64,000 nt of DNA from Perkinsela sp. CCAP 1560/9. Lineage: Eukaryota; Protista; Euglenozoa: Kinetoplastea. The stretch spans positions 1,240,001 through 1,304,000 of the forward strand of contig CBFFSA010000001.1 in assembly GCA_965644495.1 (NCBI GenBank), in the 5' to 3' direction. The notes beneath the pieces were generated by a model that did not search any database, had not been told where the DNA came from, and saw nothing but the letters and a program-made list of their open reading frames with translations. Shown piece after piece: positions 58,467 to 63,979 of this stretch (its first letter is position 1; every line of letters begins with the position of its first letter). The position numbers and the translations under genes were made by a program.

Positions 58467-60273
58467 TTTGGAGAGGGGGGCCAAAAAGGATTTTTCTTTT
58501 TATTATTAATCGAGGCTTCATGTCCAAGATACCGCTAGAAATGCTTTGAATTTCGTCTTTAAAGTACAGGATTCTAGAATGAAACTACATTCCCGGTTAA
58601 CATACCCATAATTTGGATAACATACCGGGGGGTATGTTATTCTAGCCCGCGGCCCCTAACATATCCCCCTCGTCCCATGCCTTTTTTTCCGCGACGGTAC
58701 TAAAATCCAACTGTTATATCACGTAAACCGGGGTACGACTTAATGAACCGGTACCCTTTTATATACCGGGGAGTATAATCGCTACCCAATATACCCCTCG
58801 GCTGGGGACCGTGGAAAACAAAGGGGTAAACAAAGAGAGCGTTTATAGTACCCCCCACCCCCTTGTTTTCCACGGTTCCATCATTTATTTCCTCTTTTAA
58901 CCTCTTTTGCTAAGGTTGTCTACAACGCTTGTCCGCTTTAATTAATACTAATAAATTAATTAACTAATAAATCCCCCGCACACTTATTATTCCATTTTTT
59001 TTATTCAGGAAACACACTTATTATTCCATTTGTTTTAGTATTTTACCTTTGATATTTTTCAATGATGGACCCGGGGTCAAGTTTATGAAGTTTTACGAGT
59101 GCCTTACAGGACTTAAGTCGCTCGTATTCGATCACGAGTGCCATGCGCATCTTGGGGCGCACGCGAGAGTAAGGTAAACACAGGGGGCGGTGCTCCTTCG
59201 TCATGAATCACCAAAAAATATCGATCTTGAAAAAAATGTACTCTGTAAAAACATATCGAGTTTTTTGCAGCTTTTTTTCAGTTTAGGAATGATACAGGTG
59301 TCCACGAGTGAAAAGAACCTCGGATTCGGAACGATTGGGTCGAAAAACAGTCCCATACAATTTTTTTCCAAAATCGAACGAAATACAAGACCTGTAGGGG
59401 GGGTAAAAGACGCTGATCACCACTACATTTCGTTCTTCCAAGCGTTCGCCAAGACCACCCAAAAAGACACTTAAATTTTTAATATAAACCCCCCACAGCG
59501 AATAAGTCACCCCCCTCTTTTTTTGTACAGGGGGGGTACCGTCACCCCCCCCCTCACTTGTCCTACCACGTTACATATCCGCTTTTGAGAATCTGAAGGC
59601 GGATAAGTCATGTGGTAGCCCCTCTGCCCTTGATCATTTTTGAAAATTTAGTTTTCGTATTTTTAAGTTGCAGATATTTAATAGAAACCAGTTACGACTA
59701 TCTCTACAAAGTACGACACTCAGTCTACAGATATTATCTCTTTAAAAACTATTTGAATCATGATGTCCAGAAAGAAGCGAAACTACGAACCATTCAACGC
59801 TAGTCAAGTACTAGTACTCATCACTTTGAAAACTGAAAACACAGCGGTAATGCCCCATGTGGGAGACACGTCTGGAAATATCAGAAAGATCAGAAACTGT
59901 TTTATTAAAAATGATAGCTGTATTATAAATCAGAATAAACTTAAATTGTATTTTCCGTTTTAGCGTTATACTCCTTCCTATCTTTCATAAAATCTATATT
60001 CGCGCACTTTTTGTTTACTTGGGTTTGTTTACATGCTTTAATTCAGTTGATAATTGTTTTTCCCTTGCAAAGACCATTTGTATTCATATACAATGTATTT
60101 AATCTATTAGTTCGTGGGCTCATGTTACCGGTGACACACTTTTTAGCGTAATTAAAATGTACGTTCATTTCAAGTCAAGAATCACGTTATATCACGTTAT
60201 ATTCGGAAATCGATAAAGTTACCGTTTCTGTAAAGAAAACTACTTCCTCTGAAAGTTAGGCACAAACCGAGAT

Positions 60274-60346
60274 GGGGAAGTAAGGTTGGAACCTCCTCGT
60301 GATATTCCCTGGCACTGCCATCTCGCTGATGGTACTGACGCCGACC
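60274..60346 (+). ncRNA. HDV-like ribozyme, copy 1 (two pairing defects)
   Basis: P1 GGGGAAG/ATTCCCT, P2 GGTTGG/CCGACC, P3-L3 ACC-TCCTCGT-GAT, P1.1 GG, P4 TGCCAT/ATGGTA, J4/2 CTGA. Confidence 0.75.
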
Positions 60347-60351
60347 TAATA

Positions 60352-60823
60352 AAGGGGGGGCTCGTTTATTGTTAACATTTTTTTCGAGCATTTTTTGCCA
60401 ACAAAAATCGAATATTAACAATAATCGAACTTTTACCCCCCAATGTTAACATTATACGAGTTGCAATGAAAGTTCGAATATTGTTAATTTGGGTATTTCG
60501 GCACTCTCTGGAGGTCACTGAAGGTCACTGCAATCGCCGGAGCTACTAACGACTCTCCAATGATACCTCTTTAGGGAACTATGTAGTTTTCAAATCCAGT
60601 TTCACCCAAAACTGTGTCTCTGGGGGTTGCCATCGTCGGGCGACCGAAAGTCTGTTGTATCAATAACATGGTTTCGCATATCGTTAAGCGCACCATTTTT
60701 CTTATCAAGAACGCTATACAACATGACCATAGGGAACAAAAAAATTCAAAAGTCACACGAAAAAAACGAAATTAATTCATTGTTAACAATAATCGAATGT
60801 TAACAATAAACGAGCACCCCCTT
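60352..60823. mobile_element. Third-level nested MITE (TA TSD)
   Basis: aagggggggctcgtttattgttaacatt / aatgttaacaataaacgagcaccccctt; subterminal ttaacaataatcgaa repeats. Confidence 0.85.
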
Positions 60824-61091
60824 TAAGTTCGAAAAAGAGTTTTTTCATGTATACGGATGTATACAAAAATGTGTCATACAGTTCCTCTTGATGCTACGTG
60901 ACTTGTCCTACCACGCGACTTATCCGCCTTTTCCGCTTTTTTGGCCTTTTCGCCGGGACAAGTGAGGGGGGGGTGACTGTAAAGGGGGTTACGGCACCGC
61001 TTTGTCGTTCAAAATTTTAAGATCTCCACGTTCCCGCTGTTTTCAGCTCATTTTAAAAGCTTCAAAAAACAAAATTCACTTTTTCCCAAAA

Positions 61092-62114
61092 ATGCCTAAA
61101 TCCGCATATCGGTTGCCGAAAGGGGGACTTACAAACAGTGGAAAAGTTCTATTGAGGATGAGATACGGTCAAGGTGTATCAAAAAAGCAATTGTCTCGTG
61201 ATTTTAACCTCTCAGTAAAGATTGTAAGAAAATACCTTAGCGAAAAAAACTTAACCCAAGAATATACTTTGAGCCCTGAACGAAAAAAATGTATTGAATC
61301 TCGAAGAAATAGAATAAAGAAAATTATTGCCCCTCTCGATCCCGCCGGTGTGCCAAAAATTAACTCGGCTAGGCGAATAAAGGCTAAACTAAGTGGGGGA
61401 GGTACTAAAGTGTCTCAAAGCACGGTGCTTCATGATCTTTCAATCATGGGGTATAACTATAATGCTAGGCCCGTGTGCCAAGGACTCACAAAGTTACAAA
61501 AAAGAAAAAGAGTAGCCTTTTCAAAGAAATACAATATGGATACATCTCGCGTCGTCTTTACAGACGAAAAAGTCTTTGATACTAATGATGGCCGAAAGAA
61601 TATGTGGGTAGCACCCGGTGAAAAAGCCGCTCCACGTCAAAAAGTACGCTGGGCGCCTAGATGTCAAGTTTGGGGTGCTATAGGAGTAGCGTGGAGATAC
61701 TTAGTTGTTCTGGACTCTGACTCGTCTATCACGAGCATGTCCTACATTAAGACGTTAAAAAAGGTACCTTTCCCACGTACGTGTATTTTTCAGCAAGACG
61801 GGGCCACGGCACACACCGCACGCGCCTCTAAGGAGTATATTACGAATAGAATGAAAGATCTATTGAAAAATTGGCCCCCCAATTCACCAGACCTTTCCCC
61901 CATAGAAAACGTCTGGTCTATGGTCCAAGAGGTAGTGGACGAGAAGACCCCATCAGACAAATCCTCACTCATCCGATGCATACGCAATGCGTGGTCTCGT
62001 TTGCCACAAAAAATGATTGATAAAACTGTTTTGAGTTTCGATGCTCGCCTCAAAGCGTGTATAAGATTGAAAGGCGAAAAAGTGAAAAAATGGTACAGTG
62101 CACACAATTATTAG
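61092..62114 (+). CDS. Tc1/IS630-family transposase, DD35E
   Basis: Two HTH-like regions, VFTDEK, FQQDGATAH, WPPNSPDLSPIENVW; 35 residues between the second D and E; uninterrupted frame. Confidence 0.93.
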   Translation: MPKSAYRLPKGGLTNSGKVLLRMRYGQGVSKKQLSRDFNLSVKIVRKYLSEKNLTQEYTLSPERKKCIESRRNRIKKIIAPLDPAGVPKINSARRIKAKLSGGGTKVSQSTVLHDLSIMGYNYNARPVCQGLTKLQKRKRVAFSKKYNMDTSRVVFTDEKVFDTNDGRKNMWVAPGEKAAPRQKVRWAPRCQVWGAIGVAWRYLVVLDSDSSITSMSYIKTLKKVPFPRTCIFQQDGATAHTARASKEYITNRMKDLLKNWPPNSPDLSPIENVWSMVQEVVDEKTPSDKSSLIRCIRNAWSRLPQKMIDKTVLSFDARLKACIRLKGEKVKKWYSAHNY

Positions 62115-62866
62115 TGTAACAATAATTCGTAAAACAAAAATTAGTAAATTTTTAATTAGTAAAACATTTTGCAAAATTCAGGTTTTACACCTTACATTTT
62201 TTTGTTTTTTTCGGAATTCTATCTTTTTTTACGAAACGTTTTCAGATTACTATTATTCAGATTATGTCGCACGAAAGCGAGCAAGATTTCTGTGAGCAAG
62301 ATTTTTATTAATATTATTTTTTGGGGGTGTTTTTTACTCTGTGCTACAGACACATGTTACTTTCCCCGCTCCTGATTTTTTTCTGAATCTCCGACTTTCT
62401 TGTTCGTTATACTCCTATTTTTAAAAGACTTTCTCCGCTCCGCGAACGCGAAACATCGCTCTCTTGTATTTAAGAGATTTTTTTCATATTTAAGAAAATA
62501 CTCATGTAGGGACATTGTATGGGAGGGGGTAAAAGTCAATCCCTTTTGGGGGAATATTCTTTGTAAGGATTTTCTTTGTAATACGCTTCACTGAAGCCTG
62601 ACACACTCAGCATGGGGAAGCATGGTCGGGACCTCCTCGCGGTCTTCCCTAGCATTACCATTTTGCAGATGGTACTAACGCCGACCTTAGAGGAGGCAGC
62701 CTACTCAAGCGACAGAAATACCGTTTCTGTAAAAATTGATTTTATCAAGTTGGCAAATTTTTTGTGGCAGTGCAAAAATTAGTAAAACAAAAATTAGTGA
62801 ATTTTTAATTAGTAAAACTTTTTTACTATTTTACAATAAAAGTTTTACTAATTTTTGCGAGCACTG
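62096..62866. mobile_element. MITE inserted at the transposase stop codon (TA TSD)
   Basis: Left cagtgcacacaattattagtgtaac versus right end reverse complement cagtgctcgcaaaaattagtaaaac; attagtaaaa subterminal repeats. Confidence 0.8.
62614..62686 (+). ncRNA. HDV-like ribozyme, copy 2
   Basis: P1 GGGGAAG/CTTCCCT (G.U at the cleavage site), P2 GGTCGG/CCGACC, P3-L3 ACC-TCCTCGC-GGT, P1.1 AG, P4 TACCAT/ATGGTA, J4/2 CTAA. Confidence 0.85.
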
Positions 62867-63239
62867 TAAATGTTAAATATAAACTATCATGAATAATTTT
62901 TTTGATTCCGGTTTTTAGCGCGCAAAGCCTTTGTGTTGAGATCTGCAAAATGCAACAAAAATCAGTTCAAACGGACACTTGGCTGAAAAGTTAGGTGGGG
63001 TGACTTTTGACTGCGGGGGGTTTATGTGTTCTTTCCTTCTCTCCGACAAATTACCTCTAAACACTCCGTGGCGTTCTATGTTGTCAAAAACTATTTCTTT
63101 TAATATCACCTTGTGTTTTTCAATTAGATCAGTAACATCTTTGTCAACTTTTTTCACTGTATGTTGCCGCTCGTAGTTAAAGCCCCTTTCTCTTTTTTTT
63201 CGTCTACCGCCATTATTCACAATGGCTTGAAAAAAAGCT

Positions 63240-63620: not shown

Positions 63621-63979
63621 TACTATGACTCGTTTTGTTTTCTTGTACTATTACTTGTTTTTTATTTTGCTGGGACTCGATGAAAACTCGACTGGCCAAA
63701 AACAAATAAAAAAAGAGTTTGGAGGTTCAAATCAAAGACAAAATGCGTGCAATGGTCCGCAAAATGGTAAAGATACGGGGTCTGTAAACGGCTGTAGAGT
63801 TAATCAAGGACCGATTGTCACGACGAAGAGCTATTATTTCAGTACAAGGAAATTCCGCATTGGACTCATTGTGAACTAATGTGGTGAACCAAAAGTAGTG
63901 ATTCACTACATAAATGTAGTGAGCTAACCCCGTGTAGTGAATCACTACGGGTAAACTCCAGGGTATGAATCGGCGTATA

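Follow-up and report, generated by a model that had tools for sequence, protein, structure and literature searches.

Ribozymes resembling that of hepatitis delta virus (HDV) are known as 5′ processing devices in retrotransposons without long terminal repeats (non-LTR retrotransposons), and in the full-text literature searched we found no report of any that lie inside cut-and-paste DNA transposons. How, then, might such a ribozyme come to be in an element of that kind? The question is raised by a stretch of 64,000 nucleotides from Perkinsela sp. CCAP 1560/9 (contig CBFFSA010000001.1, positions 1,240,001 to 1,304,000 of the forward strand; the whole stretch is called the window below, and coordinates refer to it unless another locus is named), in which two HDV-like sequences each lie within a transposon bounded by terminal inverted repeats (TIRs). 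On balance, and with modest confidence, we favour the view that an HDV-type ribozyme cassette was secondarily captured by Tc1/pogo-type transposons and was then spread passively by their non-autonomous derivatives.

A genome-wide family with an HDV-type fold

Copy 1 (60274–60346) and copy 2 (62614–62686), both on the forward strand, are colinear 73-nt units within a 76-nt direct repeat (60272–60347 and 62612–62687; 82% identity), on either side of which their similarity drops away. An earlier note, made from the window alone, had drawn both as HDV double pseudoknots, and all of the helices that it named are present where it placed them. P1 pairs GGGGAAG with CTTCCCT and opens with a G·U pair, P2 pairs GGTCGG with CCGACC and P3 pairs ACC with GGT; L3 reads TCCTCG(C/T), P4 is a 7-bp hairpin, P1.1 is planned as two pairs to the GG that comes after P1, and J4/2 follows C-T-(A/G)-A (CTGA in copy 1, CTAA in copy 2). 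Two of these pairs are broken in copy 1, where the 3′ strand of P3 has GAT for GGT and an A faces G7 of P1; copy 2 is paired in every helix bar one P1.1 pair (AG for GG). The note had taken the defects of each copy to be private. This holds for copy 1, since its sibling at L050 and other copies in the same host family (L034, L039 and L040) are intact; it fails for copy 2, whose P1.1 AG is common to 14 of 14 copies in its family. As ribozymes, copy 2 is probably weak and copy 1 probably dead.

Taken alone, the two window copies are weak evidence for a ribozyme. Neither is matched by Rfam at the gathering score, and a permissive scan placed the HDV ribozyme model RF00094 on copy 2 alone (E = 2.6 and 22.4 bits; the gathering score is 50). 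We also wrote an HDV descriptor of our own, comprising a 7-bp P1 starting from G, a 6-bp P2, a 3-bp P3, an L3 of 7–8 nt, two P1.1 pairs, a P4 stem and C-N-R-A, and ran it on 261 kb of sequence and on 1.56 Mb of shuffles. Copy 2 passes at one mismatch and copy 1 at two, levels at which the shuffles (6 × 261 kb) also match, 20 and 261 times, respectively.

It is the wider family that makes the fold acceptable to us. A BLAST search with 141 nt hit 43 places in the 21-Mb genome, and the block shared among them was the ribozyme. The genome-wide model search that the earlier note had proposed was carried out with a covariance model, R1, built from 35 copies: it returned 139 matches in the 21 Mb, 115 of them at E ≤ 1e-5 (copy 1 scores 86.2 bits and copy 2 107.8 bits), and hosts were sorted for 96 copies into families designated here by letters. 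At zero mismatches the descriptor gave 19 matches, at 17 distinct loci, and every match coincides exactly with the 73 nt of some family member; there were none elsewhere in the 261 kb and none in the 1.56 Mb of shuffled sequence. Homology among otherwise unrelated contexts begins and stops at the ribozyme borders. By these comparisons the 73-nt units form a genome-wide family with an HDV-type fold, and the ribozyme family is very probably real.

Pairing was examined in an alignment of 96 copies that had been fitted to P1, P3 and P4 and to which P2 and P1.1 were added as pseudoknots. Paired cells made up 89.4% of the total, against 31–55% with slid partners. Both sides are changed in 29 cells, which lie mainly in P4 and P1, and shuffles give 12.8 (0 of 500); the count comes from copies of a single genome and an alignment already fitted to P1, P3 and P4. 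Examples of compensation are C-G to U-A in P4 of family G, changes in P4 of L066 and L021/L022, and G-C to A-U in P1 of L066; P2 shows wobble changes among the copies. This covariation is supportive and not decisive, because all copies lie within one genome and related copies can inflate it. Three forms of the J4/2 junction are found (CTAA, CTGA and CAGA), each of them consistent with C-N-R-A. Of 86 distinct rows, 66 have G1·U at the base of P1 and 10 have G1-C. If the rule is relaxed a little, 23 of the 96 copies count as intact, and most of these belong to families D, E, G and C. Intact members include L050:900–972 in D, L029:1503–1575 in E, L053:306–378(−) in G and L042:2168–2240 in C; in families A and B, defects of P1.1 and P4 are common to the whole family.

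Could the 73 nt instead be some other conserved repeat module, a protein-binding or recombination site for example, that happens to be drawable as an HDV fold? The Rfam results would allow it, in that no match is significant, the HDV model stays far under threshold even on copy 2 and a permissive scan of 12 other loci did not match RF00094; covariation within a single genome is limited and open to inflation by related copies. Nested minimum free energy (MFE) folding, which recovers P1 and P4, gives ordinary z-scores (−0.25 to −1.9), a measure that is uninformative for a pseudoknot. Chance would nonetheless have to bring together five helices, a G·U pair at the cleavage site, a C-N-R-A junction and an HDV-like L3, confine the strict descriptor to family members with none in shuffles, and supply the compensatory pairs in P1 (L066) and P4 (G, L066 and L021/L022). 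It would also have to place the 5′ border of the family C units exactly at G1 after a poly(A), as for a self-cleaved RNA copied into DNA. We regard this explanation as highly improbable. Other permissive Rfam matches were dismissed as chance hits of microRNA type, and a metagenome pattern scan for the ribozyme core returned no matches.

Two further copies, L022 (C12:106140, + strand) and L021 (C12:110907, − strand), belong to identical A-like partial elements that are inverted 4.8 kb apart with their right ends facing; in both ribozymes the J4/2 cytosine is replaced (TTTA).

Transposons that carry the ribozyme

The host of copy 2 is a 771-bp miniature inverted-repeat transposable element (MITE) of family A (62096–62866, + strand), with TIRs CAGTGCAC.../...GAGCACTG of the CAGTG type and a TA duplication at 62094–62095 and 62867–62868. 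About nine genome copies share the same termini, and a paralogous Tc1-like copy at L040:2760–2910(−) preserves the empty site with a single TA. The ribozyme occupies only part of this element. Four 2.4-kb family A elements share both of its ends but run from position 386 straight to 644, so that the ribozyme region is left out; one of these long elements, L106, has an unbroken 666-aa DDE_1 frame and lacks the cassette. Aligned to L106, the cassette of the MITE stands out as a discrete insert of 256 bp (62482–62737, + strand), absent from the long A elements, that comprises a leader, ribozyme copy 2 and a second relic resembling the spliced leader (SL). It starts ∼130 nt upstream of G1, ends in A5 and is flanked by a 5–6-bp direct repeat, (G)ATTTT, at 62476–62481 and 62738–62743. 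Its insertion site in the long elements lies ∼170 nt downstream of the transposase stop. The alignment thus identifies the ribozyme of family A as a secondary insert.

Copy 1 lies in an internally deleted, non-autonomous element of family D (59539–60979, + strand), with 25-nt TIRs starting C(C/A)GTCACCCC and TA at 59537–59538 and 60980–60981; the motif of its left TIR is found at six places in the genome. Longer D copies (L034 and L039) hold CENP-B_N and DDE_1 frames, broken, on the strand of the ribozyme and upstream of it; these assign the family to the pogo-like transposons, and a homology map marks the window element as an internal-deletion derivative of them. No empty site was found for the D element itself. 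Its sibling on C8 retains just the last ∼25 nt of the ribozyme, and near the pogo-like relatives of D at C3:745279 and C7:609284 there is no R1 match.

Both sets of host ends given in the earlier note (59539–60979 and 62096–62866) were borne out, and both hosts are genuine TIR/TA elements. Its count of two host families proved too low. TIRs and TA also bound elements of families B, E and G that contain the ribozyme. This brings the TIR families with a ribozyme to no fewer than five (A, B, D, E and G), which between them account for 52 or more of the 96 copies studied. The TIRs of D, E and G are alike in style; the interiors of these families cannot be aligned, and their ribozymes are ∼85–90% identical. 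By their termini and frames, then, the hosts are DNA transposons. A rough tally of neighbouring long frames on 3-kb loci gave ∼11 on the same strand as the ribozyme and 6 on the opposite strand, no clear bias.

The ribozyme has also been lost from elements that went on to multiply. G′ is a deletion derivative of family G from which ∼330 nt were lost, leaving only the last ∼15 nt of the ribozyme, and it is present in at least six copies (among them L107–L110, at C4:98350, C57:18140, C9:370260 and C23:15570). Comparison of these loci shows that the ribozyme-less derivative was amplified, and its mobility at the DNA level was accordingly independent of the ribozyme.

The placement of the ribozyme invites a different explanation, namely that it is a working part of the transposon kept by selection. 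A sense-oriented ribozyme in the 3′ untranslated region (UTR) would free transposon RNA from polycistronic read-through, and might provide a context-independent 3′ end for the transposase message or insulate neighbouring genes. In all five TIR families it lies on the same side, ∼125–230 nt from the right end; in families A and D, for which the transposase frame is known, it is in the sense orientation downstream of that frame, at a distance of ∼170–300 nt for long D and for the insertion site in long A. This shared placement could reflect function and not merely sites where insertion is tolerated. The similarity of the ribozymes across the unalignable interiors of D, E and G, and the concentration of intact copies in these three families, point in the same direction. 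Yet the sole element with an unbroken transposase frame, long A, is without the cassette, other pogo-like relatives have no ribozyme nearby, and the frames of long D are broken. Moreover, ribozyme-deleted G′ multiplied, the C8 copy of D lost most of its ribozyme too, and the P1.1 and P4 defects of A and B run through both families. We therefore consider a working part unlikely.

Two other transposons adjoin the ribozyme-carrying hosts. MITE A is inserted in a third element, whose 370-aa Tc1-like transposase frame (61002–62114, + strand; DDE_3 and HTH_Tnp_Tc3_2) has the TA of its TAA stop as the insertion point and is thereby six codons longer (62090–62114). Family D is itself host to an unrelated nested MITE of 472 bp (60352–60823), with 30-nt TIRs and a TA duplication at 60350–60351 and 60824–60825, which starts 5 nt past ribozyme copy 1. 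Its site is empty in L034, L039 and L040, a DNA contig joins 60349 to 60824, and the nested MITE is present also in the D siblings on C12 and C8.

Leader, spliced-leader relics and retroposon-like units

Upstream of the core, the earlier note had seen a loose similarity of ∼30 nt between the two window copies. The similarity is real and extends further: an alignment of 20 copies from different families reveals a leader that reaches up to ∼62 nt upstream of the cleavage site and is common to many families. In copy 1 it consists of an SL-like relic (60208–60234, + strand), in which 20 of 22 positions agree with the exon of the true SL RNA gene, and a conserved part (60235–60273, + strand) with a small hairpin (TTC/GAA core) and a motif of the GACAC..CTCA..AT type just before G1. 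The second SL-like relic, at 62707–62733 (+ strand), 20 nt downstream of copy 2, resembles the beginning of another leader unit that has been truncated. Missing from the SL-like piece are the final 8 nt of the exon and the GT donor; families C, G, H and E have no such piece at all and retain only the core.

The true SL RNA gene (L099, C1:661200–661750) is repeated in tandem with a unit of 297 bp; GTATGAG follows its 38-nt exon, and it carries the motif CAGTTTCTGTAC as well as the GT donor. Together with one-strand gene arrays, this tandem gene agrees with the earlier reading of the window as kinetoplastid DNA. In local alignments of whole leaders with the SL RNA gene the scores did not rise above shuffles, and only the exon-like piece of ∼22–31 nt was convincing. 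The relic may stem from descent from the SL RNA gene or from retroposition of a trans-spliced RNA, or it may be there by reason of function.

SL-like sequence is also plentiful outside the leaders. In the genome the motif ACAGTTTCTGTAC is found 508 times, and in the control 0–1 times; L045:1440–1520 is among the loci. In many of these copies the SL is joined to unrelated sequence, or an SL-like unit has an upstream motif of its own; a degenerate SL-like copy lies at the end of the window (63640–63790). The counts suggest that SL-bearing sequences are massively dispersed.

One explanation would make the leader and not the transposon the centre of the system. The unit could be an SL RNA-derived small RNA gene or short interspersed element (SINE), in which the ribozyme trims the 3′ end to yield an SL-like RNA of ∼60 nt with a cyclic phosphate end, and in tandem units RNAs of ∼110–135 nt cut at both ends, as in retrozymes. 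The fixed position of the SL-like relic, ∼62 nt upstream in many families, would fit this, as would the ∼500 dispersed SL-like motifs and the tandem order of ribozyme, leader and ribozyme in L043, L062–L064 and MITE A. On the other side, families C, G, H and E have no SL-like piece, and the piece itself stops 8 nt short of the exon's end and is without the GT donor. We find this explanation very doubtful.

Our favoured account, capture by transposons, draws on the copies that lie outside TIR elements, which indicate that the ribozyme is not peculiar to transposons: it also heads a poly(A) unit and forms tandem dimers. The units of family C are ∼205 nt long, start exactly at G1 directly past the poly(A) of another unit and end in poly(A); they adjoin an RVT_1 frame, which lies upstream. 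Their 104-nt tail was considered as the 3′ end of the neighbouring long interspersed element (LINE), an idea rejected for lack of a match. That RVT_1 frame is the only one adjoining a ribozyme, and no reverse-transcriptase gene was found directly downstream of any. Tandem pairs of ribozyme, spacer and ribozyme occur on C9 and elsewhere (L043 and L062–L064), and L043:4748–4953 holds a ribozyme, an SL-like piece and a second ribozyme in tandem.

At L043:4253–4953 and L044:3889–4589, a 165-aa frame with no Pfam match ends exactly at the start of a 5′-truncated ribozyme, which is followed by an SL-like spacer and the second ribozyme; the arrangement is duplicated 55 kb apart on C9.

Probable capture by transposons and comparison with known systems

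We postulate that the RNA of an intact family member would fold as a nested double pseudoknot and would be cut 5′ of G1 by means of the J4/2 cytosine; within the window, the cuts are predicted at 60273/60274 and 62613/62614. The travelling cassette would consist of the leader of up to ∼62 nt (the SL-derived piece and the small hairpin) and the 73-nt core. It would have entered the interiors of several Tc1/pogo-type transposons secondarily, by retroposition or by gap-repair copying, landing in the non-coding stretch from the transposase frame to the right TIR, and non-autonomous derivatives would since have multiplied it passively by cut-and-paste transposition. Self-cleavage, read-through transcription and the route of capture are steps that we infer.

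The ribozyme most likely came to the transposons secondarily and was not needed for their movement. We read it as a captured passenger because it is absent from the long A parent and from pogo-like relatives, because in family A it forms a discrete 256-bp insert, and because ribozyme-less derivatives have multiplied. The earlier suggestion of a cassette spread by DNA transposons is upheld to the extent that TIR elements have multiplied with the ribozyme inside them; any role for the ribozyme in that spread goes beyond what the elements show, and passenger is the better description.

Several observations weigh against capture in this form. Beside the shared placement, the Rfam results and the MFE folding described above, just 2 of the 96 copies studied are clear poly(A) retroposon units, and no LINE with the ribozyme at its head was found. 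With more than half of the copies in TIR elements, this leaves a retroposon origin of the cassette thinly supported. The (G)ATTTT repeat that flanks the cassette could be microhomology from gap repair, not a target duplication. Lastly, conservation of the leader across families hints at selection. It is conceivable, if quite unlikely, that leader and ribozyme together are a selected module that cuts transposon RNA from read-through transcripts or releases a small SL-like RNA. Were this so, it would be the first self-cleaving ribozyme to serve a cut-and-paste transposon, and much more interesting than a passenger.

The core itself has close counterparts. HDV-like ribozymes sit at the 5′ ends of the non-LTR retrotransposons R2, RTE and Baggins (PMC3774820), with which the family shares a 7-bp P1, a cleavage site (here predicted) 5′ of G1, a 3-bp P3 and an L3 close in sequence to the HDV/R2 active site, as well as P1.1, a variable P4, the presumed catalytic cytosine in J4/2 and the association with mobile elements and, putatively, read-through. 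The units of family C, which start at G1 and end in poly(A), are a further likeness. In contrast to the R2 type, most copies here are interior to TIR/TA cut-and-paste elements and not at the 5′ end of a retroelement, none has a reverse-transcriptase gene directly downstream and many have a conserved leader upstream. Copy 2 aligns with RF00094 through P1, P3 and L3, with UCCUCGC identical, although its P4 is much shorter and its score remains below the gathering threshold.

Among kinetoplastids, which transcribe their genes polycistronically, the parallel is with the Pr77 ribozyme of L1Tc/ingi (L1TcRz) and with SIDER elements (PMC3185411, PMC4035085), where short non-autonomous elements likewise spread HDV-like ribozymes into intergenic regions and UTRs. 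Pr77 ribozymes start at C1 and differ in the make-up of P1 and P1.1 (PMC4035085), whereas the core described here is HDV/R2-like with G1·U and its carriers are DNA transposons. Retrozymes and SINEs that bear hammerhead ribozymes (PMC4918200) also resemble the present units as small non-autonomous repeats, sometimes in tandem, from which a short RNA cut at both ends is possible; the ribozyme class is a different one, the present units have no LTRs, and the carriers with the highest copy number here are TIR elements.

The carriers are themselves unexpected. Trypanosomatids have been reported to lack DNA transposons, and only Merlin has been reported in Bodo saltans and Perkinsela (PMC12278014); the present genome, which is kinetoplastid-like, holds pogo-like, Tc1-like and Merlin-like (IS1595-type) frames, and its pogo/Tc1-type elements are abundant. 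Over 50 copies of a single ribozyme have been spread by five or more TIR families through a genome that is compact and organised in polycistronic units, and a primary transcript could be cut wherever it contains an intact copy in sense orientation. The case offers a natural system for setting ribozyme cleavage against coupled trans-splicing and polyadenylation, comparable to the SIDER2-linked down-regulation of mRNA in Leishmania (PMC4035085), and implies that a catalytic RNA module can move between classes of transposon.

Some further repeats were seen around the ribozyme-carrying elements. The tandem array at C2:619525–638257 (L041, C2:618000–624000) has ∼12 units of 1692 bp, each with a family B-derived piece that contains two short frames and the 3′ half of a ribozyme; on the other strand of the unit is a 223-aa frame with an IS1595/Merlin-type DDE domain. 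The array was considered as an SL or rRNA array and rejected as such, its family B-derived unit holding only the truncated ribozyme. A SNORD37-like C/D-box match (L012:1791–1857; 31.3 bits against a gathering score of 45, E = 0.012), which may be due to chance, sits 200 nt downstream of a family B ribozyme. Finally, the transposon-rich end of the window carries two perfect 16-nt inverted repeats (GTAGTGATTCACTACA and its complement) that lie 22 nt apart at 63895–63948.

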